From contig JAPDFW010000058.1 in NCBI GenBank assembly GCA_028826165.1, positions 496,001 through 560,000 on the forward strand: a DNA stretch of 64,000 nucleotides, in the 5' to 3' direction. The notes beneath the pieces are model-generated. The model was not told where the DNA came from. It did no database searches and saw nothing but the letters and a program-made list of their open reading frames with translations. The position numbers and the translations under genes were made by a program. Shown one piece after another: positions 1,889 through 59,980 of this stretch (position 1 is the stretch's first letter; the number at the start of each line of letters is the position of its first letter). The DNA comes from Anaeramoeba ignava BMAN. Lineage: Eukaryota; Protista; Anaeramoebae.

Positions 1889-4800
1889 ATGAATTCAAGT
1901 GTTAATTTTTGGAAAAAATCTTTTAAAAATGCAAAATTTATAAACTTTTCAGGAAATGAAATGAAAATTAAAATTAAACAAAATGAAAAAATATTTTTTA
2001 ACATTTTTCCTTTTTATTCATACAATTTAAATGAAGATTTCTTTAATAAACTTGGATATAATAAAGCTATCTCATGTTTATCAACTTTATATTTTTTGTT
2101 CTCTCGATTTTCCAATCAAAAGTCTTTGGTTTTCTTCTTTGAAAATGATGTGAAACAACAAGAAAACACAACAAATTATGAAATTGAACCATCACTTTTA
2201 AAAGTTGAAATGAATCAAACAAAAAATGAAATGATATTTAATAACATTCTTGAAGCAATTTCTGTGAAAATTAACGAGATTGATTTTGGTATTAAAATTC
2301 CATTTTCAAAATTTATGAAAAAGAAAGAAAACGTGAATGAAATCATTTTACCAACAAAAATACTTGTTGTTTTGACAAATCAATCTGTTGTTGAAAAAAT
2401 GAATGAAGACTCTCGATTTTATTATTTGGAGAAAGAAATTCAATCTGATTCAGAGAGAATTACTGAGGAAACAAAGATATGGGACAGTTCTAATTTTTTT
2501 GATTTAATTTTTGTATTTTCTGTTGAAAATTTAAATCAAAATGAAAATTTAAATCAAAATGAAAATGAAAATTCAATTTATCCTCAAAAAACTCATCTTG
2601 TTCTTTTTAAATCATCTAAATTCAGAGAAAATGCCATTTTGGTTCTTATTGAAAATTTCCAAGCAATTATACAAGCAATTTCAACACATCCAGATCCCAA
2701 AAATATCAAGATATTCCATTTCCCATTAATTTCAGGTGATTTGAAACTTGATTCAGGAAAAAATAAAATAAAAATGCAAGCAAAAGAGAAAAAATCAGAC
2801 AACAAACCACAGAACCAAAATATTTGGACAGTTTTTAAGGAACTTGCAAACAAAAATATAGACACAATTGCGCTCAAAGCTTTTGATGAGCAAATTCCTT
2901 ATTTTTTATTTTATCGACAAGCAGCAAAAATTTCAAGATTCATTAAAAATACAAAAAAATTATCAAAAGTGGCAATTGGTGTATCAATGCTTTGCAGTGT
3001 GGAAACAATCATCATAATTATGGGGATAATTGGATCAGGATGTTCTTATATTCCCATTGATCCACGGCATTCAACAAGACTTCTATACAAGATTTTGACA
3101 AAGAGCGAAATTCCACTTATTTTTACTGATGCAAAAACATTACCTGTTTTTACAAAAATTCGCAATGATTATCAAATTGAAAAATTAGATATTGTGAGTA
3201 TACCTTCCCAAGAAATGGAGCAAATGGGAAAGGAAGATGAATCAAAAAAAGATAAAGACAAATCAAAAAAAAATAAAGACAAATCAAACAAAAATCAAGA
3301 TTGTGCTGTCATTTTCTATTCATTCTCTACAACAGGAAAAATACGCGCTATTCAATATACTCACCAGCAAATCCTCACAAAATTCTCGAAAAACAATGAC
3401 TTGAATCAATTCCATAAGAAAAATGTTTGTGTTTATTCATCAATTTTCAACGAAAGATCTCTCATCGAAATTTTCGGAACAATTTTCCAACTTGGAACAA
3501 TTATACCTTTAAACAAAAGTCAAGTAGTAACACCAAGTTTCCGAGATGTTGTGGAAAAGATGAATATCCAAGCTGTGATGATTACAACATACTCATTCAC
3601 TAGAATAATTTACGAGGATTTTTCTTCAAATGAAGAAAAGAATGAAAAGCAAGATGAAAAATCAAAATCAACAAAATGGCCGTTTTCTCAATTAGATTTT
3701 TTATTAATTTATGGAGAACCTTTATTATATTCAACGTTTAGAGATTTTGTGGAAAAAAATCCAGAAAATTATTCAAATGAAAACAAAAATTTTGCATATT
3801 TTTGGATTGATCCAAAATTGCACATGGATTACAAATTTAAATCTTACTTTGGAAGACATTTTCACAGAACAGCGCTTGAAAATCAGAACAGAAAAAGTTG
3901 CTGAAAATATTAGTGTTGATGAAATTGCAAGTGTTTTCAAGGAAATGGAATTTTATCAATCGCTTTTCCAAACAACAACAGGATTTTTTCCTCTTGGAAA
4001 TCCATCACGAGGAACAAAAGTGTTTGTTCTAGACGACTTTTCCAACCCTGTACCGTTGGGAGTCAAAGGGACATTGCATATTTCTTCTGATTCTATTGGA
4101 ATTTCCAAATCTTTGAAAAGATCCAAAACTAAAGAGGATAATTTAGGGATATAAATTCAATTCTTTCACTGGGAAAATGGTATATCAAACAAACATGCAT
4201 GCGTGTATACTTCCTTCTGGAAAGCTTGAATTGCTGGAGTTCCTTGGTGATGATCCGAACATTGTGTATATTGGCGATGATCTGGTTCAAATCAAAACGG
4301 TCGAAAATATTCTCCAAAAACATCCTTTGATTTCTCGAGTTTGCGTTGTTGTTCGAGAAAAGGAAAACGTTTTAAACAGGAGAATGATTGCGTATCTTGT
4401 TCCAAAAACTCAAGCAATCCCGTCTTCTCATGAAATTGATCATTTTTTAAAGGGATATCTTCCTTCTCATTTCATTCCAAATTCATATGTTTTTTTGGAT
4501 AGAAATTTGGTGTATTCAAACGAGAAATTCGATCTTCGAGAGTTCGTTAAAGGAAATGTAACAGGAATGAATCGAGAAAGATTCACAGAGATTGACTATC
4601 CAGCGAGATTACTTCCTGAGAATGAAATTGAGGAGAATTTGTGCCAATTATTTGCATCAATTCTGAAATTAGATCGTGTTTATACTTCAGATAATTTCTT
4701 CTCTTTAGGAGGTGATTCAATCACGGCCGCAAGATTAATTGCGAAGATGAATCAAATGGGATACAATAATATTACCTGGACAACTTTATTCACATATCCG

Positions 4801-7800
4801 ACAATCTACAATCTGGCGCAATTTATTGGCGAAACATTTGGGAATTTCAGTGAAAAATACATTTTATCATCAAGTCAAAAAAGAATATTCCAAAAAAACA
4901 TACTTGAATTGGATCCTCCAAATTACATTGTGAAAATCAAACCCATTGTCCAAAGTCCTGTTAATTTCAATCTCTTTCTTCGCGCTGTTGAAATCATGAT
5001 CCACCAACACGATATTTTCCGTGTTTATTTTGATAATATGGAGCCTAAAAGTATTGGAAAAGATCTGAAAAGATCACTTTTTTACAGTGAAATTTGCATT
5101 TCTTCTGAAACAACAAACATTCGCAAAGAGATTGCAAATACAATCAATGAGATTTCAAGGAACATGCAGATCGAAAAGGGTCCACTTTTCCAAGTTGTGT
5201 CTTTTTTTGTGCAAGAAAAAGAGCTTTTTAACATTTTCTTGATTTTCCACAAATTGATATTTGATTTGAAATCAATTAAACAATTTTTGAAATCATTGCA
5301 AACAATATATTTGAAGTTATTTAACAGCGATGAAACAGAGCAAGTGCGGATGGAGTCAACATACTATTATCAATGGGTTCACATTGAGTCAAACTCAGCA
5401 ATCCCAATTTCTTCATTCCGCTATTGGAAGCACATTGCCGATCTCTGCAAATCAAGCGATGTTCTGCTTCCTTTTGATAAAAATGCTGATCCCATTCGAA
5501 ATCGAATTGCAAATTCAGTTAAATTGTCGATTCCCAAAGAATCAACACAAACAGTATTTCGAGATGTTTGTCGTGCAAAAGGATCCGAACTGCATGATCT
5601 TTTTGCTGCTGCTTTGGTTATGGAGCTTTATAAATGGAGCCGAAAAGAAAGCTTTCTTTTGCATCTTGTTGAAAATGGGGAAAAATCAACAACGATCCAA
5701 AAATCAGTATTAGGGCCAAGTGAGAATATTATCCCCATTTTTATTCAATTAGACCAGTATTTATTGGAAAACGCAACAAATCCCTTCGCTTTTCTTTCCG
5801 TTATCAAAAATCAATCAAGAATAAGTCGATTGCACATCCAAGCTCTCAATAAGATTCTTTATTATATCAACGAAGAAGTCATTTTGGATGACTATACATC
5901 AATGGAATTGACAGAGAATCAACCCAAATCAATCGATAACCAAGCTGTTGTTGAAGATATCTCTCAAAATGTCTCTGAAATACAAACACAAGAAAAGGAA
6001 ATCTCGATCCTTTCTTCTTCGGATGAAGAAAACGTTATGGAAGCGCAAAAAATATCGCGATTCCAAATCAAAAAACTTTCTTCTCTCAAAAATTCCGTGA
6101 TCCAAATGCAATTTCTCGGAAACATTGATTTCACTTGGTTTTCACTTGGAAAAGTATCACTCAAGCAAATCACCTCGAGTGACTTGAGTTTCCGTCTAAA
6201 TCAGCAAAGATTCCAAATTGAAAAACCTTATTGGATCCAAATATTCTCTTTCCTTCATAACGGTTCACTCCATTTCAAGTTTCTTTTTGATCAGGATAAA
6301 ATCAGCACTCAAGTAATGAAATCGTTGTCAAGAAAGACTTTGAAAACAACTGTGAAAATTGCAAAAATTCTCTCTGCAAAAAAACCACAAATTTTTCAAC
6401 TCAAAATGAGAGCAGATCACTTTCCGTTCACAAAATATTTGACAGATAGTGCTGTTGAAAAAATCACCACAAAGGATCCTTTAATCACAAATATTTTCCC
6501 TCCGCTTTCTGGATATCGAGATGGCATTCGCCACTTGCTCTCATTTGGTGATGTCCCAAGAGACTCGCAAACACGGCTCAAATATCATTCCAAACAATTC
6601 CATGTTGATTTTTCCGATCCAAATTTTGATCATAAAATTTTCCACAAATCAATGATTTATTTTATTCTCCATAAATGCCCATTTTTGTGCAGTTATTTTA
6701 TTCCAAACCCAAATAAACCACGAAAAGCGCTTCAAATCACGCGATCCAAAATTAAAATCCCGTCTCGATTTCTTTCCCTTTCTTCTGGACTCAACCCCCA
6801 ACAAAAAGAACAAGCCAAAAAGAGAATACTGAAAGAAGAGTATGAAACGGATTTTGATTTATCTGAACCGCCGCTTTTGAGAATAGCCATTATAAAAACA
6901 AATCAAAATAACAGCTATGTGCTGGTTTTCACTTTCGAACCTTTTCTATTCGATCTCTGGTCAATTCCACTTTTGATTCAAGGAATTTTCCAGAAATACA
7001 ACAAATTTGTGATTGAATATCAAAAATCACACAGTCTTGATTTTTTGGTTCAAAAGAAAATCAAAGACGTTCATGATCATAAAAACCTTCATTTTATCAA
7101 CAAACTCTCGCAATTTGAACAAAATTTATCGCTTGAAAATTCAAGAGAATTTTTCCAAACTCTTCTTATTGGGATCAACTTTAATTTTCTTTACACTTCA
7201 AAGAGAATCACTGATAAAAGATTTCGGCGAGCGCAACATCGGGAAACAAATGAACAAGAAAACCACGATAAAGACAAAGATAAAGACAAAAACACGCAAA
7301 AGGAACCAAAATATCAACCAAAAATTTCATTTACTCGATTGGATTTTTTGCAACGAGACATTTCGGGACAAATTCCTTATGATCCAGAGCTTTTCCGCGA
7401 AATATCAAGCACAATCAGCGGAAACAAACACAAGCAAATCACGGAATTTCTCCAAAAAAACAAACTCACATTGAATACACTTGTGCATTTTATTTGGGGA
7501 TTGAATTTGTTTCTTTCATCAGGAAAAGAAGACATACATTTTGGATCGGTTTTTTCAGGAAGATCACCGGAATTAGGGACAAAAAGCGAGACAACAATCG
7601 GATATTTTGAGCAAGTTCTTCCTTTCCGATTGATATTCAAAAGCGAATACAATATTTTGGAGCATCTTGAAAAAACACAGTTTGGATTAGTAAAATTACG
7701 AGAAATGACAAACACAACAATAACAAAAATTCGCAAGTGGTGCTCGCTTCCCAAAAATCAGTATCTCTTCGAAGCGGGTGTTATTTCCCTTCACCAGTTC

Positions 7801-8508
7801 CCCAAAGACACAATGCTCTCGCCGATCGACATTTGCGATGATAAGTATCGTCTTCTTTTTCCGATCAGCAAAATCACGAAACTGCAAATCAAAATTTCCG
7901 AATTCCATGTTTTTGATTCTTTTCGTCATCCGTTGACTGTTTTTGTGCAACCCTCCAAAGAAGCAATTCTAATTCGTCTTGTTTACTTCCAAAACAACTT
8001 CGATGAGAAAATTATCACCAATTTATTCGAGCAATTCATAAGCATTTTTCTTCTTTTTGGAATTGAACAAAATTCCGAATTTGAGAAAATGACGATCCAA
8101 AAATTCATTCAATTTTTCCGCGAGCAGAACACAAAAATGGAACAAAACGAAGTGAATCAAACCGTGAAAAAGCCGTTGAGAAAATCGAAAAATGTTCCTA
8201 AATTCGATCCACAAAAAGTTCTCAAAACAGGATATTTAACAAAACAAGGAGGATCGGGTATTTCAATGAATTGGAGAAAGCGTTGGTTTGTTCTTTCTGC
8301 TGATAAGTGTCTTATTTATTTCAAATCCAAAAATACTACTCATTCAAGTGGTGTTATTCCGTTGCAAGATTCTCAAGTGGAAGAAGTTCCAAATCACAAA
8401 AAGAAAAACTGTTTCAAAATTGTTACAAGATATCGAACTTATTTAATTTTTGCTGAATCTCAATCTGTTGCTCTTGATTGGATTAATTCTATTAAAAAAG
8501 TTTTATAA
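1889..8508 (+). CDS. NRPS-like protein: degenerate A domain, PCP/T, E-like and C(DCL)-like domains, fused to a C-terminal PH domain; about 2,205 aa after correcting two +1 frameshifts (~3755, ~4147)
   Basis: Three consecutive ORFs (1889-3904, 3711-4154, 4177-8508) carry collinear A-domain motifs: GCSYIPIDP, FYSFSTTGKIRAIQYTH, YGEPL, PLGNP..GTKVFVLD...NPVPLGVKGTLHI, VENILQKHPLI, LPSHFIP, NEKFD. PCP motif DNFFSLGGDSITAARL. Two condensation-family domains follow, then PH domain KTGYLTKQGG...NWRKRWFVL...DWINSI. Confidence 0.85.
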
Positions 8509-8642: not shown

Positions 8643-9097
8643 ATGGAATTATCACAACAAATTTTACAAGATCTTCATTTAGCTTTTCAATTATTTGATT
8701 TTGATTCTGATGTTTGTTTTAAATTTATATTATTTTATTTTCCAAAAATTAATAAATTATAAAAAATTAATTTAGAATTTAATTTCTGTAAATGATTTTG
8801 AAAAACTTATTCGTGGTCTTGGTTTAACTCCAACTAATAAAGAGATGCAAGATTTTATTGTATTTAAAAAAGAAAAACAACAATAAAAACAAATTTATTT
8901 ATTTCCAAATTTTTTTTAGAAACAAAGAAAGTAAAAAAAAAATTTTCAAAACAATTATTTTTATTTTTTAAAAATTATTTTATTTTTTGAGAAGAGAAGG
9001 ATTTGATTTTGATTCTTTTCTTCAAGTTTATATACATTTAGCTAAAAACCAAAAACAAAATGAATTAGATTTACAAGAAATGTTTAAAGATTTTGAA
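8643..9097 (+). CDS. Calmodulin/myosin-light-chain-like EF-hand protein, 5' exons only; 3' end unresolved
   Basis: Exons 8643-8711 (MELSQQILQDLHLAFQLFDFDSD), 8776-8859 (NLISVNDFEKLIRGLGLTPTNKEMQDFI), a probable micro-exon 8920-8930, and ~8995-9097 (GFDFDSFLQVY...DLQEMFKDFE), with GT-AG boundaries. A possible indel-damaged later exon lies near 10210-10290. Confidence 0.65.
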
Positions 9098-9104
9098 GTA
9101 AATT

Positions 9105-10145
9105 TTTAAAATTCATTTATACAATTAAAACAAAATTCATTTACAAAATTCATTTATACAATTAAAACAAAATTCATTTATACAATTAAAACAAAATTCA
9201 TTTAAAATTCATTTATAAAATTAAAACAAAATTCATTTATACAATTAATTTAAAATTCATTTATAAAATTAAAACAAAATTCATTTACAAAATTAATTTA
9301 AAATTCATTTATAAAATTAAAACAAAATTCATTTATAAAATTCATTTAAAAATTCATTTATAAAATTAAAACAAAATTCATTTATAAAATTAAAACAAAA
9401 TTCATTTATAAAATTCATTTACAAAATTCATTTATAAAATTAAAACAAAATTCATTTATAAAATTAAAACAAAATTAATTTATAAAATTAAAATAAAATT
9501 CATTTATAAAATTAATTTAAAATTCATTTACAAAATTAAAACAAAATTCATTTACAAAATTAAAACAAAATTAATTTATAAAATTAAAACAAAATTCATT
9601 TATAAAATTAAAACAAAATTAATTTATAAAATTAATTTAAAATTCATTTATAAAATTAATTTAAAATTCATTTATAAAATTAAAACAAAATTCATTTACA
9701 AAAATTTAATTTATAAAATTCATTTATAAAATTAAAAACCAAAATTCATTTATAAAATTAATTAATAAAATTCATTTATAAAATTAAAACAAAATTCATT
9801 TATAAAATTAATTTATAAAATTAAATCAAAATTCATTTATAAAATTAAAACAAAATTCATTTATACAATTAATTTAAAATTCATTTATAAAATTAAAACA
9901 AAATTCATTTATAAAATTAATTTAAAATTCATTTATAAAATTAAAACAAAATTCATTTATAAAATTAATTTAAAAATTCATTTATAAAATTAAAACAAAA
10001 TTAAAACAAAATTCATTTAAAATTCATTTATAAAATTAAAACAAAATTAGATTTTTAAAAATTTAAAAATTTTTATAAAACATCTAAACAAAATTCATTT
10101 ACAAAATTCATTTATAAAATTCATTTACAAAATTAAAACAAAATT
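9105..10145. repeat. Intronic tandem repeat based on AAAATTCATTTATAAAATTAAAAC
   Basis: Directly visible degenerate tandem units following the GT donor at 9098. Confidence 0.9.
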
Positions 10146-19407: not shown

Positions 19408-21362
19408 ATGCAAACTTATTCAAATTTAGAAAAACTTTCAAATGATTTAAAAAATTTATTTCAAAATCAAAATGGAAATGAAAAGAAGAAGAAAGTTATT
19501 TTGATTTTGAAATAATTTGTGAACAAAATCAAACTTCATTTAAAACTCATAAATCAATTCTTTCTTCAAGAAGTCAATATTTTAAATCTCTTTTTAATTC
19601 AAAAATGAAAGAATATCAAGAAAATAAATTGATTCTTCAAGATGTTTCAAGTTCAATTCTATTTCCAATTTTGAATTATTTTTATTCAGGAAAAATTGAA
19701 TTTAATTTAGAAAATGCAATTCAAATTTTATTTTTTTCATCAAAATATTTAATTGATGAATTAATTGAAATTTCTTCTAATTTTATCAAAAACAATTTCA
19801 GATTTGAAACTGTTGTTGATGTTCTTAAATTATCTGAATCAATGAACTTCAATCAATTATTAGATTCTTCTTATCAATTTATTTTTGAAAATTTTCAAGA
19901 ATTTATCAAAACTTCATTTTTTCTTGAACTTGAAGAAAATCATTTAAATTCATTATTATTAAATAATGAAATTCCAATAAATGAATTTGAAAAATTTCAA
20001 TCAATAATAAAATGGGGAAAACATAAATTAAATATTAATCAAGAAAAAAAAGAAAAAGAAAAATTACAAATCCAAATTTCAAATCTTATTCATAAAATCA
20101 AATTTGATGAGTTCTCAAAAGAAGAAATTGAATATTCTTTGAAAGAAGAATTAATTCCAAATCATCTTTCACAAAAATTAATTCAATTCCAACAATTTCA
20201 ATATGAACAAGAACATGAAAAGAAGTTGAATGAATTTAAACAAGACCCAAATCAATATCCAAATCAAAATCAATATCCAAATCAATATCAATATCAAAAT
20301 CAATATCAAAATGAATATCAAAATCCAAATCCAAATAAAAATCAATATCCAAATCAATATCAAAATGAATATCAAAATGAATATCAAAATCAAAATCAAT
20401 ATCCAAATCAATATCAAAATGAATATCAAGATCCAAATCCAAATCAAAATGAATATCAAAATCAAAATCAAAATCAAAATCAATATCAAAATCAATATCA
20501 AGATCCAAATCCAAATCAAAATGAAAATGAATATCAAAATCAATATCAAAATCAAAATGAATATGAAAATCAAAATCCAAATTCAAATCAAAAACCAAAT
20601 CAATATCAAAATCCAAATCAATATCAAAATCAAGATCCAAATCCAAATCAATATCAAAATCAAATTCAAAATCAATATCAAAATCAAGATCCAAATCAAG
20701 ATCCATATCAATATCAATATCAAAATCAAAATCAAAATCAAAATCAATTAATTTTACATCAAAGTTCTGAATTTGATTCAATTATTCATGAAGAAGATTA
20801 TTATCAAAGATTAAAAGAATGGATAAATGATGATAAATTCTTTTACAAAATGAAATTGGGATTTTCAGCAAAAAGAAACGGATTTGATTCTCAAAATTGG
20901 CATAATATTTGTGATAATAAAGGAAAAACATTAATTATTATCAAAACAAAAGATAATTTTATTTTTGGAGGTTTTACTAAAGTTGGGTTTATAAGTAATA
21001 AATCAAAATGGAGAAAGAAAGATAGAAAGAAAAATAAAGGTTTTATTAAAGATCCAAACGCCTTTATTTTCTCTTTAAGAAATGATATTAATGATAGAAA
21101 TCCTGAGAGATTTACAATTAAAAAAGGAAAGGAACAATTTGCTATTCTGTATTCAGTGTTTCAAGGTCCAATTTTTGGTGGAGATGATAATTTTCTTCAA
21201 GATTTTTTGTTAAAGAATAATTTCCAACCTGGTTTTTCAAATTTTGGTTCTACTTATAATCTCCCTCAAGGAATTAAATATGAGACATATCAAGCTCAAA
21301 GTTACTTAGCTGGTTCTTATGATTCATGGATTGTTGATGAACTTGAGACTTATTTCATTTAA
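19408..21362 (+). CDS. BTB-BACK-TLDc protein with Q/N/Y/P-rich insert; frameshift near 19472
   Basis: ATG 19408 (MQTYSNLEKLSNDL). Adding one A in the A-run near 19472 gives YFDFEIICEQ...FKTHKSILSSRSQYFKSLF, which joins ORF 19605. TLDc motif GFDSQNWHNICDNKGKTLIIIKTKDNFIFGGFT...ELETY. Confidence 0.85.
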
Positions 21363-22532: not shown

Positions 22533-24561
22533 ATGGATAATAATAATAATAACCAAATTGAAAATGCAAATCAAAATCAAAATGAAAATGAAATGAAAAA
22601 TTTAGAAAAAAAAGTAACAAAAAATTTAATTGAAGATTATTCAAACCTTTTAAATGGAAATTCATTTAAAGATTTTTCAATTTTTGTTGAGAATAAATCA
22701 AATCCTTTTGAAATTAAAGTTCATAAATCAATTTTATCTTCAAGATCTCCTTTTTTTAATGAATCATTAAGGCAAGAATCTCTTTCTATTTTTTTAAATC
22801 AATTTAATAAAAAAGAAATGGAATCAATTTTGAGTTATATTTATTATGGAAATATTTCTTTTGAGAATCAAGAAAATCTTATCCAATTATTGGAAATTTC
22901 AATTTATTTTAAATTAAATTTATTGAAAGAAATTATTCAAAAAAAAATTTTAAATTCAATTAATTATTCAAATTTTTTCCAATTTTTATTCCAAAATCGA
23001 AATTTAAATTCAAATGAAATTGAAATAAAATGTTTTGAATTAATAAATCAAAATTTTTCCCAAATTCAAAATAATGAAAATTTATTCAATTTAACTAAAG
23101 AAGAAATTATCAAATTTATTCAATTTAAACAAGAAAAAAAAGAAATTTTTCAATTTGATTTTTTTCAATTTTTAAATAATTGGATTAAAAAAAGAAATGA
23201 AAGATTAAAAGGAAAGAAATATGAACACAAGATGAATGCAAAGAAAAGATTATTTCATTCTTTTTTTTCATTATTTGATAAATATTCAATTTCAAAACAA
23301 GATTTTGATAAATTAAAACAATTTGAAATTTTTCCCAAATCTTTTTTAGTTGATATTCAAAACAAAATTATACAAGACAATCAAAAACAAGAAAAGAAAT
23401 TAAAATTGAAAAGAAAGGAAATTCGACTTAAGAATCACGAAATTAAAGATAAAATCAAAGAAGTTGAGAAAATGAAAAAGGAAATTGAGGATAAATGGAA
23501 GAAAGAAGTTGAGAAAATGAAACCAACCTTTGATAAATATGGAGAACAATATCAAAAAGATTTGGAATATAAAAGAAAGACAAATAAAAGAAATTAAAAA
23601 GAATTTTCCCCAATTTGAAGATTCAGAAATTGTTAAAGACATTGAATATGTTAAGAAATTACAAGAATGGATAAATGATAATGATTTTTTTTCTAAAATG
23701 AAAAAAGGATTTTCAGCAAAAAGAGATGGATTTAATTCTCAAAATTGGCATAAAGCAGTTGATAATAAAGGAAAAACATTAGTTATTATCAAAACAAAAG
23801 ATAATTTTATTTTTGGAGGTTTTACTCAAGTTGGATGGACAAATGATAAATCAAAATGGAATGAAGAAGATAGAAATGATGATTTTGGAGATATTATTGA
23901 TCCAAATGTTTTCCTTTTTTCATTAAGAAATGATAAAGGAGATAGAAAACCTGAGAAGTTTACAATTAAAAAAGGAAAAGAAAAATTTGCCATTTATTAT
24001 GAATCAGAATTTGGTCCAAGTTTTGGAAGTAATTCTGAAAATATTATTATAATTAAAATTAAAATTAATAAATAATCCAAAATATTAATATAATAAATAA
24101 TATTATTATTTCAATTTAAAATAAAATTAAATTTAAATTAAATTATTATTAATTATTATTAAAATTAATTATTTATTTTTATTAAAATAGATGGTAAATA
24201 ATTTTTATTTAATAAATATTTATTATTATAATTAAAATTAAAATTAAAATTAAAATTAAATTAAATTAATAAATAATCCAAAATATTAATATAATAAATA
24301 ATATTATTATTTCAATTTAAAATAAAATTAAATTTAAATTAAATTATTATTAATTATTATTAAAATTAATTATTTATTTTTATTAAAATGTTTATAGGTG
24401 ATTGTGGTTTAAATTCTAAATTACAACCTGGTGAATCAAATTTTGGTTCTACTTATAATCTGCCTAATGGAATTACTTATCAATCAAATGAAGCTAGAAG
24501 TTATTTAGCTGGTTCTTATCAATCATGGGTTGTTGATGAACTTGAGACTTATTTCATTTAA
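22533..24561 (+). CDS. BTB, coiled coil and TLDc protein; frameshift near 23572, intron 24029-24397
   Basis: BTB (DFSIFVE...IKVHKSILSSRSPFF). An extra A near 23572 separates the two ORFs. The TLDc domain continues after a GT-AG intron (FGS|DCGLNSKLQPGESNFGSTY...SYLAGSYQSWVVDELETYFI*). Confidence 0.85.
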
Positions 24562-41729: not shown

Positions 41730-43520
41730 ATGAATGATTGTTTATTTTTTGGTTGGAATAAATTACCAAAACTTATCAAAAATGAACCAGAAAAAATAAC
41801 AAAACCAATTCAATTTAAATTTGAAAATGAAAATGAAAATGAAAAACAAATTAAACAAATTTCAACAGGAGAATTATCAACAATTTTCCTTTTCAAAAAT
41901 GGAAAAGCAATAGAATATTTAAGTAAAAATGATTCAAAACAAAATCCTTCAAAAATTCAAATTGAAGAAAATATTCAAAAAGTATCTGTTGGTTCTCGAA
42001 ATGAAGCTATTTTAACAATAGAAGGAAATGTATTTGCAAAAGGAGAAGATATTAATCCAGAAAATCCAAATAAATTTATCAATATTTCATCATTAATTGA
42101 AGATACAACTGATAGAATAATTGAAGATATTGTTTCTGGATTCAATTCAATTTACTTATTAACTTCAAATCAAAATGCTTATGGAATTGGTTCAAATCAA
42201 TTTGCTCAACTTGGTTTTTATTCTAGAACACTTAAAAAAACACAAAAACCAATTTTAATGATGAAAAATGTTTCTAAAATATTTTCAGGAAATTCTTCTG
42301 AATGCGTTTTTCTTTTAAATTCAAATCAAGAATTATTTGGATCTGGAAATAACGATTATGGTAAATTTGGATTAGGAGAATCAATGGAAGAAGAAGAAAT
42401 CCAAAAATTAATCAAAATCCAAAATATTCCAAAAGGCAAAATAATCGATATTCAAAGTGGAGATTATCATTCAATAATGTTGATTGAAAATGAAAATGAA
42501 AATGAAAATCCAAAAAGAAAACTTTATTCATGTGGATTTTGGGAATGTAATGGACTTGGAAAAAATGAAACTACTTATGAATTTACTGAAATCAAATCAT
42601 CTTTATTTGATAATGATGATAATATTCTTGATTTTTCTGTTGGTTATAATCATACTTTGATTTTAACTTCTAATTCAAAATTAATAGGATTTGGATTTAA
42701 TAATTTAGGTCAATTAGGAACTGGAGATACAGATGAAATAAAATTAAACTCATTTCAAATTGAACTTCCTAAATTAAGATTTAATGAATATATTTCTAAT
42801 TATCATATTTCTTGTGGATATCAAAAATCATTTCTTTATTATTCTCCTTTTCTTTCCAATCTTGAAGAAGATTTGATAAAATTATTTAAAAGAAAAGAAT
42901 TTTGTGACATTTCATTTAAAACAGAAAATGGAGAAATAATTGAAGCTCATAAATTAATATTGAAATATAGATTAAATCAAAATGAAAATCAAATTGAAAA
43001 ACTTCAAGAAATTATTTCAAGAAAATCAATTAAAGAATCAAATCAAATATTTGAAATGATTTATTCAAATAATTCCAAAATAAATCCAAAATTATATTAT
43101 GAAATTAAAGAAATTATAAATTTAAATGAAAAAATTGAAGAAACAATGAAAAGAATTTATTTAAATGAAAACGAAAATGAAAATGAAAAAGATTTTATAA
43201 TTGAAAGAAAAGAAAAACAATATAAATTTCCCAAAATAATATTAATAATGAGAAGTGAATTATATCGAGGAATGTTTTTATCTGTAACTGAAGATAAATC
43301 AAATAAAGTTACAGATTATAGTGAATTAAGTAATAAATCATTTCAATTATTTGAATATTGGATTTATTCAAATCAAATTAAAGATGAAATTCAAATTACA
43401 CAACAAATTATTGATGAAATTGAAACTGGAATTGATTATTTCCAATTAAATCAAACATATCCAAATTTATTTGATTTATTAATTAACAAATTTAATAATC
43501 AAAATCAAAATTTAAATTAA
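41730..43520 (+). CDS. RCC1-repeat protein with C-terminal BTB-like domains
   Basis: RCC1 motifs (GSNQFAQLG, IQSGDYHS, FSVGYNHTLIL...GFNNLGQLGTG) and BTB (FCDISF...IEAHKLIL; RSELYRGMF). Confidence 0.85.
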   Translation: MNDCLFFGWNKLPKLIKNEPEKITKPIQFKFENENENEKQIKQISTGELSTIFLFKNGKAIEYLSKNDSKQNPSKIQIEENIQKVSVGSRNEAILTIEGNVFAKGEDINPENPNKFINISSLIEDTTDRIIEDIVSGFNSIYLLTSNQNAYGIGSNQFAQLGFYSRTLKKTQKPILMMKNVSKIFSGNSSECVFLLNSNQELFGSGNNDYGKFGLGESMEEEEIQKLIKIQNIPKGKIIDIQSGDYHSIMLIENENENENPKRKLYSCGFWECNGLGKNETTYEFTEIKSSLFDNDDNILDFSVGYNHTLILTSNSKLIGFGFNNLGQLGTGDTDEIKLNSFQIELPKLRFNEYISNYHISCGYQKSFLYYSPFLSNLEEDLIKLFKRKEFCDISFKTENGEIIEAHKLILKYRLNQNENQIEKLQEIISRKSIKESNQIFEMIYSNNSKINPKLYYEIKEIINLNEKIEETMKRIYLNENENENEKDFIIERKEKQYKFPKIILIMRSELYRGMFLSVTEDKSNKVTDYSELSNKSFQLFEYWIYSNQIKDEIQITQQIIDEIETGIDYFQLNQTYPNLFDLLINKFNNQNQNLN

Positions 43521-48547: not shown

Positions 48548-51500
48548 TCAAATATCCAAATCATCAATAATGTTATCATCATAATAACGAGAATTAGCAG
48601 TTTTTTGAGGTTTTGCTTGTTGAGTTGTAGTTTGAGCGGTTTTATTTGGAGCCAAACTAGAACGACTTCCATATATGGATGACATTGAAAGGTGTTTCAT
48701 TTGGTAATCAGTTTGACCTTTACGCCATTTGATGTTTGTTTTTGTTGAAGGTAAAATATCTTCGACTTTGACATCTTCGTTACTTTTTCTTCTTTTGATA
48801 TAAAAGACGCCGCCTACAATTAAAGCAGCACCAGCGAGTCCACCGATGATTCCACCAGCAATAGCACCAGCGTTTGTGCTGCTTCCGCTGTCTGTAGCAG
48901 GAGGTTGAGGAGATGTGCCGTTGATGATAGTTTTGACAGAATTGTTTGCGGCGAAATTTGACATATGATTGCAAGAACATAAGACATTAGCATTTCCTGG
49001 GTCAGTTAAAAAGCAACCATCTGATGACCACATTGAGCTACTCTCTTCCCAGCTCATACAGTTATACTGGTATTCCGAGCTGTTGAATTCTCCTTTTTTC
49101 GGGATATAAATGCCGAAAACGTTGTTCAAGTCTTTAAAATCCATAGCATTTCCGTTACAGTCCCAAAATGTGACTTGCTTTACGCCGGTATAAAGTTGCA
49201 AACTTGATTCTGCGGCGAATGGATTGATGCCGAAATCCACAATGGAGATCATGAATGTGTCGCAACTTCCCAACTTGTATGCAATCGCTGGGAAAAGAGA
49301 TGTTGAAATTTCCAGTTGGTTCATCAGCGTTATGCCCGAGTATGTTGTGAACGATGTAGCATAAGTTGTAATTGATGTATTGCTAGACTGATATGTTGTG
49401 CTTGAGAAAATTTGTGCTGAATTTCCGCTAATTTTTGCCATGCTTTGAAGAAATCCTGACAAGCTCTGAATAATTGAGGATGTATCAAATTCTTGCACAA
49501 TAGCAAGGATCTGTTGTAACGTATCAAAAAGCCCCATGTCAATTTCGTCTTTCATCTCATTTCCTAATTCTTGGAGATAGTTGGCTGCGTCAATCGCAGT
49601 TGTCTTTGCTGTGGCTGTCAATGTCGTTGTGTTTTTCAAAAGCTTATTCAAAATATATGCCAATGCTCTCATCTCTTCTTTGCAAGTAACGTCAATTATT
49701 CCACTCACTGTCTTGTTGTAGTTGTCAAGAAGCTTCTCGTAAACAGTTTCGTTGAGTTCGTATTGATCGGCAAATCCGACGGCAAGAAGAAGTTTCATTC
49801 TTGCGGCGCCAAAGTCGGAATTGGTGATTGAAACGCTCATGTCGTTGTCAATGAAATCGAGAATGAAATCATCTGGAGATGCTTGTGTCTCTGTCGAGTT
49901 GGCATTGATTTCAACTTCGACCATAGAATCGGCGGTTAAAATTCCGGCATAAACTTTTTCCACTCCCGGCGGAACAAAAGTGCGGAAACTGGATTGTGTC
50001 AAAAGATTTGAAAGAGGGATCATTTTCTCGCCGTCTTTTATGTAGAAAATATAATTCAGTTCCTGTCCCATTGGTGCAACCCAATTCTCGCAAATGAAGG
50101 TGAAATTGGTGCTAAATGAGTCTCCTGAGGCTGGAGCACCTGAGCAAATTCCCCCAACGGCTGGAGGAGCAGTCGTGAATTTGATTGGAATCGAGCCCAT
50201 TATGTCATAGCCTGAAGAAGTAGTACTGAAATCGAGTCTAAATTCATAAGTCTCACTTGCGTTGAATGTGTTCGCTGGGAAGACAATACCGCCTTCCGTT
50301 TTTGTAACGCCGTTTCCGGAGAAATCATATTTCCCGTCAACTGAAACCCATGTCAATGTAAAATGGTTTTCAATGTCACTTATAAACTGTCCATCAAATC
50401 TCGCCATCAATGTCAATGTGTTTGATGCGTCTGCTGGATATGACATCATTTTGATTATTCCATTCGCTTGACTGTCATCAACAACCTGCACAAATCCGAA
50501 TACTGTCAGTGATTCGCGCGAGTCGTTGGTTGTCACAACAAGACTGATGTAGTATCTTCCCAAAGAAAGTAAGTTTGCTGGCAATGTCAAGTATGAGTTT
50601 GTCAATGTCATCAATTGGCATGGATTGCCTTGGTCATCCTCGCAAGTCCATTTGTATGTCATTGGCATCCCGGCTGGATCTGAAGAATCCGATCCATCAA
50701 TTGTAAGAGAATCTGATGCGTGGATTGTAACAAATTGTGGGGTCATAACAGCTATTGGAACTGGATCCTCAATAAAAACAGTGACAGTTGAAGTTGTTGA
50801 TCCGGATACTTGGACAGTGACATCATACGAAGCTAAATTCAATCCTGTTGTGTTAAATCTCAATTCGGGAAAGGTGTCAACGCCAGATATGTCAACGCCT
50901 GCCATTGTCCATTGATAACTATAAGATCCTGAATTTCCGCAATTAGAGACTATCGCTTGTAAGATAAGAGTATCTCCCCGTTTGACTCTGAGTGAGCCTG
51001 CAATCCCAACGCTTATAGCAGGTGTTGAGGGAATATTCAACGAAAATCCAGTTGATTGATTATTTTCCATTATGAAGTTTGCCAGTTCAAGTGTAAAATT
51101 ATAATAACAATCCGTTTCGAGCTCTGAATATGGAATATCGACAAGGAGATCACCTTGACTTGAAGCTATATCGAGGATGGTATCAATATTTGCCGTACTA
51201 GAGCAATCAGAAGAAAGAGACCAAACAACGTTTTTGAATTTTCTGCCAACAGCACCAGTTGATCCAGTTGCGTCGAGATAAAGATTCTCGCATGTGTTTC
51301 CTAGTGTTTCAGCCCAAAAAACTGGCACAGCTTGTTCAGGATTATCTGCTGCTTCGATTGTGAAAGATTTTCCTGATAAGTTTAGCCATGTGTAAGTGGT
51401 AAGTCTTATGTTTGTTGTGAATCCTATTGCAGTTCCTACTGTAAAGTCTGAATCGTATCCTAATTCTACTTCTAATGTTTTTGCATCTTTCCATGTGCAG

Positions 51501-52310
51501 ACTGATGATGTTCCAAGGTTGAATCCATAACCCCCTCTATATAGGTCTGGTTCTTGAATGAAATCTGAGCAATCGGTACTGTTATATTTGTTTGTTTCTC
51601 CAGAGAATATTACCATCAGTTTTCCATCGTCAGTAAATTTAAGTGAATCAACAGTGAAGTCTATATTTTTATTTAAAATATTTATTATATTTAAATTTAT
51701 TATTATTAAATTTATTATATTTATTATATTTATATTTATATTAAATTTATTATATTTATATTAAATTTATATTTATATTTATTATATTTATATTTATTAT
51801 ATTTATATTTTTTATATTTATATTAAATTTATTATATTTATATTTATTAAATTTATATTTATTAAATTTATATTTATATTATATTTATATTTATATTATA
51901 TTTATATTTATATTTATATTTATATTTATATTTATATTTATATTTATATTTATATTTATATTTATATTTATTATATTTATATTAAATTTATTATATTTAT
52001 ATTTATATTTATATTTTTTAATTTTATTTATTTTTTTTGCTTATTAAAAAAAATTTGCTTTTTTTTTTGTCAATTCTTCTTTTAAAAAAAAATTAAAAAA
52101 AAAATATAATTTTTTACCTGGACATTCATTATAAAACCAATAATCACAAGTATCTGTAGTTGGGCCTAAATAAGTTCCATTTACACATACTTGAATTGTG
52201 TCATTACAGCACCAACCCTGACCTCCATATTCTAGTGAAAGACAAGTTGGACAATCAGTTGAAAATCCTAATGTTATCAAAACAGAAAGAAGTAAGATCA
52301 CTCGCAACAT
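48548..52310 (-). CDS. Single-pass receptor: signal peptide, Cys-rich (PSI-like) domain, PKD/REJ region, GAIN/GPS, one TM, cytoplasmic tail
   Basis: Exon 1 52310-52118, intron 51661-52117. REJ/PKD motifs (LDATGS, IDGSDSSDP...YKWTC, GGICSGAPASG...FTFICENW...LNYIF). GPS motif CMSW...WSSDGC...CSCNHMSNFA. TM AIAGGIIGGLAGAALIVGGVFYI followed by KRRK. Confidence 0.85.
51670..52015. repeat. Intronic (TATATT)n microsatellite
   Basis: Directly visible. Confidence 0.9.
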
Positions 52311-55174: not shown

Positions 55175-57283
55175 TTAAACCATTTCTAAATCATTCTCTT
55201 CATCATTAATTTTTTGTCTTCCATCAGTTTTTTGTCTTCTTTTCTTTCGATATCTTTGCATCATAATAATTCCTCCAATTAATAATCCAACTCCCATAAT
55301 TGAAACAAATACTCCAATCACAATATTTTGAGTTTGACCTGATTTATTATCTGTTGTTGGTGTTGGATTAGGAATTGAAGATGTTGTAACTGTTAATGTT
55401 GTTACTTCTCCACAAACTTCACTTGAATCACATGAAGAAACTTGAATTTCATATTCTTCATTTTCAATTTCTGCAATAAAGACTTTTTTGTTTGTTATTG
55501 ATTCATCATTTCCTGTATCATCTTTGTTTTTGGCTCGATAAGTGAAATTGTAATAATATGGATTGCTTGAACAGTTATTCGATGGAATCCAATCACATGT
55601 TATTGTAACTCCTTCAGAAACATGACATTCAAAGTTTTCTACTTTTTCAAAAAATGTTGAAATTCTTGTTTCAAATACTTCTCCTTGATCATCTCCTTGA
55701 CATGAATACGACCTACAAGCCCACATAGAAACAGAATAAATTTGTCCACATTCTAATTGATTAAGATATTGTGAAACTGTTGAATTTTGAATTGTTAAAG
55801 TTGATGGTGTTGCTTGTGTTTTTGCTTTATAATCCATTGTGTAATGATTGAAATTAGGTGAATTTCCTTTTATTGGAACATCAGGAATATCCCAAGAAAC
55901 ATTAAATGAACGAGTTGTTCTGTTTTTTAATTTGAAATTTTTGATAGAATCAATTCTTGTTGTTAAATTATGAAAGGAAGATGGATCACCACATTGCATT
56001 GTTAAATTATCACATCCTCGAATTTGGATTGAATAATTAACATTTCCACTTATATTATGATAATTTGATGAATTGAAATTTTGATAAAGAGTTGAACCTT
56101 GAACATTTGGTGATGTGATATTAGTCCAATTTGATCCATAATTGATTTGATAAACAATTTCTCTTGAAAAATCAATTTTATCCCAATAACATGAAAAAGA
56201 TGAATATAAGGGATTGCATGCCACAATATCAACTTGAGGAATGAAAAGAGATTGATAAAGAAATACTTGATCTGAACTTGGTGCTCCAATAACTACATAA
56301 TTTGTTGCAATACTAACACTTCTTCCAAATTTTGATAAATTTGTTTCATTTAATACTTTTTCATTATTCCAATCACTTCCATCATATCTGTAAATAAATG
56401 TTTGATTGAAATGAGGTGCTCCAATAACTGTAACATTTGTTGAAACTGAAACACTTTTTCCAAATTGTGATGAAATATCTTGAGTTAATACTTTTTCATT
56501 ATTCCAATCAATTCCATCGTATCTGTAAATGAATACTTCACTCATATTTGGTGCTCCAATAACTGTAACATTTGTTGAAACTGCAACACTTGAACCAAAA
56601 CTTAATGAATTTGATTGAGTTATTTCTTTATCAAGATTCCAATCACTTCCGTTATATCTGTAAATAAATGATTGATTTGAACCTGGAGCTCCAATAACTG
56701 TAACATTTGTTGAAACTGAAACACTTTTTCCAAATTGAGATGAAATTGATTGATTTAAAGTTTTTTCAAGATACCAATCACCATTATCATATCTATAAAT
56801 GAATGATTCACTTGAATCTGGAGCTCCAATAACTGTAACATTTGTTGAAACTGCAACACTTGAACCAAAACTTGGTGAATTTGATTGATTTAGTACTTTA
56901 TTAAGATTCCAATCAGTTCCATTATGTCTGTAAATAAATGATTGATTTGAACCTGGAGCTCCAATAACAATAACATTTCCTGAAACTGCAACACTTTTTC
57001 CAAATTGAGATGAATTTGATTGATTTAAAACTTTTTCAAGAATGAAATTTGAATCAATTTTTCGATAAACATTAACTTTTTCGAAAGAATAATTTGAAAT
57101 CACAAGAATATTTTGAGAAACATCAACACTCCATCCAAAATTTGATAAATTTTGACTTGATGAAAAAGTATCCAATAAGTACCAATCACCATTTGCAGAT
57201 TTTAGATAATCAACTTCTTCTTTTTGAGATTGAACTATTCCAAAAACACACAATATTATTATAAAAATAATAATTTTCTTCAT
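55175..57283 (-). CDS. Type I membrane protein: FG-GAP beta-propeller, FN3-like domains, TM (copy A)
   Basis: Signal peptide; seven FG.SV.VS.NV.VIGAP-type repeats; FN3-like SFNVSWD...Y...L.CGQIYSVS; TM IVIGVFVSIMGVGLLIGGIIM with a basic stop-transfer segment. Confidence 0.88.
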   Translation of the reverse strand: MKKIIIFIIILCVFGIVQSQKEEVDYLKSANGDWYLLDTFSSSQNLSNFGWSVDVSQNILVISNYSFEKVNVYRKIDSNFILEKVLNQSNSSQFGKSVAVSGNVIVIGAPGSNQSFIYRHNGTDWNLNKVLNQSNSPSFGSSVAVSTNVTVIGAPDSSESFIYRYDNGDWYLEKTLNQSISSQFGKSVSVSTNVTVIGAPGSNQSFIYRYNGSDWNLDKEITQSNSLSFGSSVAVSTNVTVIGAPNMSEVFIYRYDGIDWNNEKVLTQDISSQFGKSVSVSTNVTVIGAPHFNQTFIYRYDGSDWNNEKVLNETNLSKFGRSVSIATNYVVIGAPSSDQVFLYQSLFIPQVDIVACNPLYSSFSCYWDKIDFSREIVYQINYGSNWTNITSPNVQGSTLYQNFNSSNYHNISGNVNYSIQIRGCDNLTMQCGDPSSFHNLTTRIDSIKNFKLKNRTTRSFNVSWDIPDVPIKGNSPNFNHYTMDYKAKTQATPSTLTIQNSTVSQYLNQLECGQIYSVSMWACRSYSCQGDDQGEVFETRISTFFEKVENFECHVSEGVTITCDWIPSNNCSSNPYYYNFTYRAKNKDDTGNDESITNKKVFIAEIENEEYEIQVSSCDSSEVCGEVTTLTVTTSSIPNPTPTTDNKSGQTQNIVIGVFVSIMGVGLLIGGIIMMQRYRKKRRQKTDGRQKINDEENDLEMV

Positions 57284-57871
57284 TTGTTTGTTTACTATTT
57301 TATTTTAATTAAATTTAATTTAGATTAAATCAAAAATAATTTAAATTTTAAATTATTTATTATTTATTACCTTTTCTTTTTGATTAAAGAATTGAAAAAC
57401 TAAGTAAAAATCCAAAAAAAAAAATAAAAATTCAAAATAAAAAAATAAAAAGAAACATGAATATTAATTAATAGTGAATCATCATTAAATTTAAATTGAT
57501 CATAATTAATAAATAAAAATACTAACCCCTTTAAATAAAAAAAAAAGTTTTTTTTTTCCAAATCATTAAATAATTTAATTCAAATTTGCCATTTTCATAA
57601 ATTAAAAATTATATAAATTAAAAATAAAAACAACAAAGAAAAACAATTCCTTTTTTATTTTATTTTAGAAATTATTAAATTTAAATTGATCTCTTTCAAA
57701 AAAAAAAAACAAAAATTAAAAAAAGATCAGAATTAATTGAGGAAATTAAAATTTTTCTTCTTTATTCAATGATTGAAATTTTCCAAATTGAAAAAAAAAA
57801 GGAAAATTGTAAAAGAAGAAAAATCCAAAAAAAAAATTAAGAAAAGAAAAAAAAAAGAAGAGGAATCAATT

Positions 57872-59980
57872 TTAAACCATTTCTAAATCATTCTCTTCAT
57901 CATTAATTTTTTGTCTTCCATCATCCTGTTGTCTTCTTGCCTTTCGATATTTTTTAACCATAATAACTCCTATAATTAATATTCCAACTCCCATAATTGA
58001 AACAAATACTCCAATCACAATGGTTGTAGTTTGACCTGATTTATTATCTGTTGTTGGTGTTGGATCAGGAATTGAAGATGTTGTAACTGTTAATGTTGTT
58101 ACTTCTCCACAAACTCCATTTGAATCACATGAAGAAACTTGAATTTCATATTCTTCATTTTCAACTTCTGCAATAAAGACTTTTTTGTTTGTTATTGATT
58201 CATCATTTCCTGTATCATTTTCATTTTTGGCTCGATAAGTGAAATTGTAATAATATGGATTATTTGAACAGTTATTCGATGGAATCCAATCACATGTTAT
58301 TGTAACTCCTTCAGAAACATGACATTCAAAGTTTTCTACTTTTTCAAAAAATGTTGAAATTCTTGTTTCAAATACTTCTCCTTGATCATCTCCTTGACAT
58401 GAAGGTGATCCACAAGCCCACATAGAAACAGAATAAATTTGTCCACATTCTAATTGATTAAGATATTGTGAAACTGTTGAATTTTGAATTGTTAGATTTG
58501 ATGGTGTTGCTTGTGTTTTTGCTTTATAATCCATTGTGTAATGATTGAAATTAGGTGAATTTCCTTTTATTGGAACATCAGGAATATCCCAAGAAACATT
58601 AAATGAACGAGTTGTTCTGTTTTTTAATTTGAAATTCTTGATAGAATCAATTCTTGTTGTTAAATTATGAAAGGAAGATGGATCACCACATTGCATTGTT
58701 AAATTATCACATCCTCGAATTTGGATTGAATAATTAACATTTCCACTTATATTATGATAATTTGATGAAGTGAAATTTTGATAAAGAGTTGAATTTTGAA
58801 CATTTGGTGATGTGATATTAGTCCAATTTGATCCATAATTGATTTGATAAACAATTTCTCTTGAAAAATCAATTTTATCCCAATAACATGAAAAAGATGA
58901 ATATAAAGAACTGCAATTTTGCATATCAACTTGAGGAATGAAAAGAGATTGATAAAGAAATACTTGATCTGAACTTGGTGCTCCAATAACTACATAATTT
59001 GTTGCAATACTAACACTTCTTCCAAATTTTGATAAATTTGTTTCATTTAATACTTTTTCATTATTCCAATCACTTCCATCATATCTGTAAATAAATGTTT
59101 GATTGAAATGAGGTGCTCCAATAACTGTAACATTTGTTGAAACTGAAACACTTTTTCCAAATTGTGATGAAATATCTTGAGTTAATACTTTTTCATTATT
59201 CCAATCAATTCCATCGTATCTGTAAATGAATACTTCACTCATATTTGGTGCTCCAATAACTGTAACATCTTTTGAAACTGCAACACTTGAACCAAAACTT
59301 AATGAATTTGATTGAGTTATTTCTTTATCAATATTCCAATCACTTCCGTTATGTCTGTAAATAAATGATTGATTTGAACCTGGAGCTCCAATAACTGTAA
59401 CATTTGTTGAAACTGAAACACTTTTTCCAAATTGAGATGAAATTGATTGATTTAAAGTTTTTTCAAGATACCAATCACCATTATCATATCTATAAATGAA
59501 TGATTCACTTGAATCTGGAGCTCCAATAACTGTAACATTTGTTGAAACTGCAACACTTGAACCAAAACTTGGTGAATTTGATTGATTTAGTACTTTATTA
59601 AGATTCCAATCAGTTCCATTATGTCTGTAAATAAATGATTGATTTGAACCTGGAGCTCCAATAACAATAACATTTCCTGAAACTGCAACACTTTTTCCAA
59701 ATTGAGATGAATTTGATTGATTTAAAACTTTTTCAAGAATGAAATTTGAATCAGTTTTTCGATAAACATTAACTTTTTCGAAAGAATAATTTGAAATCAC
59801 AAGAACATTTTGAGAAACATCAACACTCCATCCAAAATTTGATAAATTTTGACTTGATGAAAAAGTATCCAATAAGTACCAATCACCATTTGCAGATTTT
59901 AGATAATCAACTTCTTCTTTTTGAGATTGAACTATTCCAAAAACACACAATATTATTATAAAAATAATAATTTTCTTCAT
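57872..59980 (-). CDS. Type I membrane protein: FG-GAP beta-propeller, FN3-like domains, TM (copy B)
   Basis: Same length (702 aa) and near-identical to copy A. Confidence 0.88.
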   Translation of the reverse strand: MKKIIIFIIILCVFGIVQSQKEEVDYLKSANGDWYLLDTFSSSQNLSNFGWSVDVSQNVLVISNYSFEKVNVYRKTDSNFILEKVLNQSNSSQFGKSVAVSGNVIVIGAPGSNQSFIYRHNGTDWNLNKVLNQSNSPSFGSSVAVSTNVTVIGAPDSSESFIYRYDNGDWYLEKTLNQSISSQFGKSVSVSTNVTVIGAPGSNQSFIYRHNGSDWNIDKEITQSNSLSFGSSVAVSKDVTVIGAPNMSEVFIYRYDGIDWNNEKVLTQDISSQFGKSVSVSTNVTVIGAPHFNQTFIYRYDGSDWNNEKVLNETNLSKFGRSVSIATNYVVIGAPSSDQVFLYQSLFIPQVDMQNCSSLYSSFSCYWDKIDFSREIVYQINYGSNWTNITSPNVQNSTLYQNFTSSNYHNISGNVNYSIQIRGCDNLTMQCGDPSSFHNLTTRIDSIKNFKLKNRTTRSFNVSWDIPDVPIKGNSPNFNHYTMDYKAKTQATPSNLTIQNSTVSQYLNQLECGQIYSVSMWACGSPSCQGDDQGEVFETRISTFFEKVENFECHVSEGVTITCDWIPSNNCSNNPYYYNFTYRAKNENDTGNDESITNKKVFIAEVENEEYEIQVSSCDSNGVCGEVTTLTVTTSSIPDPTPTTDNKSGQTTTIVIGVFVSIMGVGILIIGVIMVKKYRKARRQQDDGRQKINDEENDLEMV

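Follow-up and report, generated by a model that had tools for sequence, protein, structure and literature searches.

A six-member family of pseudo-NRPS proteins ending in a PH domain in Anaeramoeba ignava

The NRPS-PH gene and its locus

The DNA analyzed here (the window) is a stretch of 64,000 nucleotides from Anaeramoeba ignava. At positions 1889-8508 it carries, as three overlapping frames on the plus strand, a gene for an NRPS-like protein with a PH domain at its end, situated between two host genes. Upstream lies an ankyrin-BTB gene with its stop at 1833, and downstream an unrelated, intron-containing gene, EF-hand-like as judged by eye, with its ATG at 8643. The gaps to these neighbors measure 55 bp and 134 bp, in agreement with the 55 bp and about 135 bp of an earlier note on this DNA. 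The same note had called the gene intronless and placed it behind a host-type TCATTT motif. The first statement is true of the window copy, but its paralogs do contain introns and the copy itself is split over three frames; the motif is indeed present at 1866-1871, but because it occurs 149 times on the plus strand of the window it is weak evidence alone.

BTB genes (ankyrin-BTB, RCC1-BTB and BTB-BACK-TLDc) are numerous and belong to a large host expansion; in the window they are found at 91-1833 (the upstream neighbor), 19605-21362, 22533-23597, 41730-43520 and 60838-62304. On the minus strand, 48548-51616 encodes a polycystin- or adhesion-receptor-like protein with REJ, PKD and GPS domains, its GC content of 0.41-0.42 exceeding that of its surroundings, and 55175-59980 holds a tandem pair of 702-residue proteins with FG-GAP repeats and fibronectin-III domains, candidate adhesion proteins. 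Very AT-rich tandem arrays of short units, apparently in long introns and with a GC content under 10%, are found at 9100-10100 and again 5' of two of the paralogs described below (C68 and C115).

A Pfam search places AMP-binding in the frame from 1889 (residues 317-625), and AMP-binding_C (52-119), PP-binding (165-227), three Condensation stretches and a terminal PH match (1359-1452, E 3e-19) in the frame 4147-8505. The order of domains is a half condensation domain (C-lobe), adenylation (A), thiolation (T), epimerisation (E), DCL-type condensation and PH. The earlier note had described an A-T-E-C module; all four domains are there, but the N-terminal part of about 290 residues (1889-2770) had been missed. 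It comprises just half of an additional condensation domain, the C-terminal lobe that lies against the A core, as evidenced by ESM Atlas feature matches to Condensation clusters (0.97) and by a paralog model whose residue 1 aligns to residue 189-197 of the C domains of EntF, SrfA-C and McyB. The A core begins in the first frame (2777-3798; PF00501, E 3e-25, and alignment to a bacterial A profile), where the P-loop YTSGSTGxPKG reads YSFSTTGKIRA and the A4 Asp is a Glu. It continues in the middle frame, the A6 region (3804-4145, motifs A5-A6, with GELxxGG changed to GTLHISS in the frame alignment), and ends together with the small subdomain at 4149-4596 (PF13193 and alignment), without the A7 Asp and A8 Arg but with the A10 Lys. 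The T domain (4639-4827; PF00550, E 1.6e-10) is of the GGDS type and has an intact serine codon at 4717-4719, as the note had it. The E-type domain extends over 4852-6366, with HHxxxD replaced by HKLIFD at 5248-5265, and the DCL-type domain over 6469-8106, with EPFLFD at the corresponding positions 6937-6954. No release domain or downstream module follows the latter; the PH domain (PF00169; 8221-8508, where the stop codon ends) is the last one. Note that the three frames were aligned and searched separately and never as a joined protein.

When scored with profiles derived from bacterial domains, the first complete C-family domain comes out as E (71 bits, against 53 for LCL and 38 for DCL) and the second as DCL (58+107 bits, against 35+11 for LCL), which together with the tree bears out the DCL-type core that had been proposed. 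The first also groups with E domains in a quick tree (SH-aLRT 100) and follows a GGDS-type T domain, as expected of an epimerisation domain. Pfam, profiles and tree are thus in line with the collinear arrangement of the note, and the presence of A, T and C-family domains in order is a property shared with functional NRPSs.

The three frames are separated by two breaks, at each of which the window copy has one base more than its paralogs. One lies in a T run at 3799-3803, within motif A5 (located to within about 15 bases from the change of frame in tblastn and from alignment to the paralogs), the other in a G run at 4146-4148 (paralog alignment). Introns were rejected at both, since the only GT-AG pairs available would delete conserved coding sequence. 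The assembly is based on R9 nanopore data polished with Racon, Nanopolish and Pilon (PMC11550330), and a near-twin pair of NRPS genes on C47 and C99 of the same genome differs by similar one-base insertions. We consider both breaks to be probable nanopore assembly errors; the integrity and expression of the window copy itself are unproven. That it is a recent pseudogene with two real frameshifts is possible, though not the more probable case: the breaks, 345 bp apart, outlasted Illumina polishing, the locus is missing from the antiSMASH list of the genome paper, GenBank annotates only the third piece of 1,443 residues as an exact match, and no transcript-derived protein of this copy was found in homolog searches, where the first frame as a query returned nothing. 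No second copy without the breaks exists in the A. ignava assembly. On the other hand both breaks fall in homopolymer runs, homology is continuous on either side and nothing else is disabled in 6.6 kb. The missing database matches carry little weight for this family, because the annotated third piece is concealed in a cluster (P0030) under an unrelated representative of 39 residues. Sampled words of the window are present in four public runs from two studies at 0.89-0.96, and an unlabelled run (X3) that holds 0.90 of them, and that may be RNA as inferred only from its transcriptome-like size, also argues against a pseudogene. The matter leaves the reading of the family unaffected and is independent of the functional alternatives considered below.

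Paralogs and origin of the family

Five further genes with the same end are found in the A. ignava genome, on C68, C115, C8, C101 and C114, by which they are named here. All five have open frames, of 1,970-2,423 residues, and the proteins of the six-member family measure about 2,200-2,400 residues. The PH-fused copies are 24-35% identical to each other, with the exception of C101 and C114 (about 70%), which have a spliceosomal GT-AG intron at one common position; C68, C115 and C8 apparently begin with a short exon or intron. C68, C115, C101 and C114 are transcribed, according to transcriptome proteins in EukProt. Entry P0035 equals C68 over its full length (100%), P0037 matches C115 (99.7%), and P0002 is a chimeric transcript contig of which the first ~1,200 residues match C101 and the last ~450 match C114. 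The junction between DCL and PH is crossed in the transcript-derived frames of C68, C115 and C114, a check proposed in the earlier note that is met at the family level only, and because of these three proteins the fusion cannot be an assembly chimera. With five paralogs in open frames this explanation was rejected for the architecture, as was bacterial contamination in view of the 579-kb host contig, the host neighbor genes and the introns in paralogs.

According to a quick IQ-TREE analysis, the host E domains, all six of them, are a single clade (SH-aLRT 100) next to bacterial E domains, and the six host DCL domains likewise are a single clade (100), nested in the DCL group (99). The host A domains, too, make up a single clade, which sits on a long stem. 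A grouping of the latter with C99 A2 (support 89) is weak and was not trusted. The C domains of C47 and C99 group with LCL, apart from the PH-fused family. As for these two genes themselves (L018 and L019, respectively, of G000), they are near-twin (98.5%) two-module NRPSs of the order C-A-T-C-A-T-R that have an intron and whose A domains look intact; two extra single bases break the frame of the C47 copy.

When the PH domain is compared with the genome, its paralogs take the first five places (45-60%), and since all other PH domains remain at 43% or less, the PH fusion occurred once. At the level of these comparisons, a single fusion of an NRPS fragment to a eukaryotic PH domain preceded the expansion of the family. 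The ancestral gene was a piece of a multimodular NRPS that contained E, starting in one C domain with its C-lobe and reaching to the end of the next. All non-host NRPS matches with a named source are bacterial, which suggests a bacterial origin for the NRPS part; fungal NRPSs were not included in the trees. The donor lineage was not resolved in them, with long stems and biased composition, although the top matches are often cyanobacterial. Six paralogs, one fusion, introns, transcripts and purifying selection support the proposal of the earlier note that a laterally acquired NRPS fragment was domesticated and fused to a host PH domain, and the domain trees it had called for gave a single host clade for A, E and DCL alike. 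The family is a lineage-specific, whole-module pseudo-NRPS with six members in A. ignava.

A profile of the DCL+PH part of the family was run against 1.84 billion representatives. Among the matches listed, only A. ignava proteins matched over the full length, and those ranked next are large multimodular NRPSs with their best stretch on the C part only. Leave-one-out scores of 374-654 bits exceed the lowest score of the list (285), so that a homolog no more remote than the paralogs would have made the list. Neither this profile nor word-based database searches retrieved a condensation+PH protein outside A. ignava among the matches listed, consistent with the note's knowledge of no NRPS that ends in PH. 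Cluster representatives can however hide proteins, and other Anaeramoeba species including A. flamelloides are not excluded. A literature search for NRPS plus PH yielded nothing relevant, no characterized family that would have refuted the earlier claim came to light, and a term search of the main text of the genome paper, which covers that part of the source only, found no mention of the PH domain (PMC11550330). The family is apparently undescribed.

Catalytic residues, folds and selection

The sequence of the A3 P-loop is altered in every copy, acidic residues being a frequent replacement, the A4 amine-binding Asp has become Glu in five copies, and the A7 Asp and A8 Arg are gone in all copies examined. 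The motifs for ATP and substrate that a working A domain would need (A3, A4 Asp, A7, A8) are lost in all copies examined, and what remains is the A10 Lys in most copies and the A5 Glu in four of six. Among A-domain columns without variation in bacteria, those for ligand and catalytic residues are conserved in 10/72 cells and the others in 113/192. Note that this comparison is neither blind nor independent, with related rows and with classes that were drawn up once the table was known. The DCL domain also lacks its HHxxxDG motif, with both histidines missing in 6/6 copies and a conserved FE[PS]FxxD in their place across paralogs. In the E domain the second histidine of HHxxxD is absent in 5/6 (a Lys in the window copy) and kept only in C114 (L017:1057-6966), which in addition has a canonical NGK at A10 and the T serine and, as judged from these residues, is the best candidate for residual chemistry. 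As the substitutions are shared among paralogs, the loss of adenylation, epimerisation and condensation residues predates the duplications.

By these residues the family fails the tests for a working NRPS. The genome paper suggests that the products of its antiSMASH-listed regions are metabolites that select symbionts, and the antiSMASH 'NRPS' regions of its Supplementary Data 7 fit the coordinates of C115, C68, C101, C114 and C8, not the window locus (PMC11550330). A canonical synthetase that makes a secondary metabolite for symbiont colonization would be consistent with these five matches and with the canonical domain order. Yet the catalytic motifs tested in A, E and DCL are broken, except for E in C114, and a single module without a release domain and with half an upstream C domain is a poor candidate for such a line; we regard this as hardly credible.

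It is also conceivable that the proteins are still enzymes with a re-wired chemistry, for example membrane-targeted acyltransferases or hydrolases that use the replacement motifs, FE[PS]FxxD in DCL and Glu at A4. These replacements are conserved across paralogs at about 30% identity and C114 retains HHxxxD in E. C-family domains are furthermore known to tolerate motif changes, some being active without the second histidine (PMC10510592). Simple inheritance would however account for the shared replacements as well, the conserved Asp of the C motif is structural, and an A domain that lacks the P-loop, the A7 Asp and the A8 Arg is not expected to carry out ATP-dependent activation, so that we consider the idea doubtful.

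The predicted models are confident (pLDDT 81-82). The A core model superimposes on solved A domains with a Z of about 40 and an rmsd of 2.5, the best fold match of the DCL model (pLDDT 82) is the SrfA-C C domain, and the PH domain follows a long helix and a low-confidence linker. Both structure alignments consist mostly of bacterial rows, which biases them toward the canonical fold; row P0200 was left out of structure alignment A3 but retained in the random sample for the class profiles and the A/PH comparison. As far as models and alignments can tell, structural residues and predicted folds are retained while the catalytic residues are lost.

For C101 and C114, dN/dS is 0.16 overall, 0.046 in T, 0.08-0.14 in E and DCL and 0.28 in PH, and for the window copy and C68 it is about 0.34 with dS near saturation. 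Neutral evolution with a dN/dS near 1, which would have refuted the earlier claim, is not observed in the C101/C114 pair in any domain. Low values in spite of motif loss mean that the dead domains are being retained, and for this one pair purifying selection has been demonstrated.

The most constrained part of the pair is the T domain, the window copy, C68, C101 and C114 have retained its serine, and the host has a PPTase (PF01648 match on C113), so that the prerequisites for carrier modification are met and the modification itself is inferred at most. This would suit a membrane-tethered carrier acting in trans, in which the serine, primed by the PPTase, is loaded by an intact enzyme, and the dead domains hold the resulting thioester in place for transfer to a membrane lipid or protein. 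The genome does have intact A domains, and the loading enzyme might be the C-A-T-C-A-T-R NRPS on C47/C99 or an acyl-CoA ligase. That NRPS, however, has T domains of its own and LCL-type C domains of separate origin, the DCL histidines are absent in all copies of the PH-fused family, and the Asp that precedes the serine is an Asn in four of them. The serine is moreover lost in C115 and C8, one of which is transcript-supported, and carrier chemistry is therefore dispensable there. A carrier of this kind is possible but unlikely.

The PH domain and a proposed role

A sequence search of the PDB identified the PH domains of myosin X, cytohesins/GRP1, PLEKHA6, DAPP1 and TAPP1 as the nearest solved ones. 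The signature of PH domains that bind 3-phosphoinositides is K-Xm-KxR-Xn-Y (PMC3737031), and the window copy meets it as K-Xm-RxR-Xn-Y, with Arg replacing the second Lys. Four of the six paralogs have the first Lys in position, and two lack it. With cytohesin/GRP1, myosin X, DAPP1 and TAPP1 the domain shares sequence type and signature; differences from the cytohesin, myosin X and DAPP1 proteins are this Arg and the lack of a Sec7, motor or SH2 partner. The genome also encodes a PI3K Ras-binding domain. We infer a cytohesin-like PH domain that is predicted to bind 3-phosphoinositides; its lipid specificity and any recruitment are inferences without binding data.

The reading that we prefer, with moderate confidence, is that of a phosphoinositide-recruited pseudo-enzyme scaffold. 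The PH domain would bind phosphoinositides made by PI3K where phagocytic or endocytic membranes, perhaps that of a symbiont compartment, face the cytosol, and carry a rigid, still-folded NRPS body there. This body would offer its empty pocket and tunnels to small ligands or to partner proteins, which it would bind but not turn over, and no peptide would be made by the PH-fused family. Localization, binding role and link to a symbiosome are inferred, and there are no activity data. The single origin, the transcript-derived fusions, the motif loss, the folds and selection in C101/C114 (0.05-0.28 per domain), the dispensable T serine and the relationship of the PH domain, with a PI3K domain in the genome, all fit such a scaffold. 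The strong constraint on T and a serine kept in four copies beside a host PPTase, on the other hand, are not obviously needed by a pure scaffold. The intact E motif of C114, the A10 Lys of most copies and the activity of certain C domains without a second histidine (PMC10510592) likewise stand against it, as do the two paralogs without the first PH lysine and the lack of a transcript-derived protein for the window copy.

A more specific idea, which we put forward as speculative and rather improbable, is a new eukaryotic cytosolic receptor or carrier made from the dead module. Recruited by phosphoinositides around engulfed or symbiotic bacteria, it might bind bacterial amino acids or peptides via the old pocket, with the conserved Glu at the amine-binding position, E and DCL tunnels shaped for D-residue peptides and a phosphopantetheine arm in four copies, and so help to sort symbionts from food.

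The scaffold has precedents in part. With bacterial A-T-E/DCL modules (GrsA, TycA-TycB, McyA-McyB, SrfA-C and E2-C3-A3 of PvdL) the family shares domain order, a GGDS-type T before E and a DCL after E, as well as predicted folds and the C-lobe/A platform. It differs from them in the absence of A, E and C catalytic motifs and of the N-lobe of the first C domain, in ending in PH rather than A, TE or R, and in being nuclear, with introns. DIP2 domains are FAAL-like, and DIP2 is widespread, unlike the one-species A. ignava family; to our knowledge it has no T, E, C or PH domains. Adenylate-forming-type domains have nevertheless been reused there too in a eukaryote, in a lipid-related role according to the part of the source available (PMC9342972). 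The laterally acquired NRPSs of bdelloid rotifers (PMC11258130, used in part) and of C47/C99 are likewise bacterial-type genes domesticated and duplicated in a eukaryote, but they are apparently functional and biosynthetic, and no PH fusion was found in them within that material. The binding without turnover is modelled on the X domain of glycopeptide NRPSs (Tcp12, PDB 4TX2), an inactive C-family domain that is kept for binding and recruits P450s (PMC10510592). X domains were absent from our tree, in which the host domains fall with E and DCL. The X domain is one dead domain on a working line, whereas A. ignava has a whole dead module joined to a eukaryotic lipid-binding domain.

Dead NRPS domains are known singly, but a whole module that is folded, selected, present in six copies and joined to a eukaryotic lipid-binding domain was not found in the databases and papers searched. 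The Anaeramoeba symbiosis is to be read differently as well: five of eight NRPS-type regions of A. ignava that had been proposed as possible makers of symbiont-selecting metabolites are pseudo-enzymes of the PH family, which leaves the C47/C99 pair as the only clear synthetases among the regions checked. Members of the family can be tested as possible phosphoinositide-dependent factors of phagosome or symbiosome, and the family would be evidence that an assembly-line enzyme may, once laterally transferred, be recruited as cell-biological hardware.
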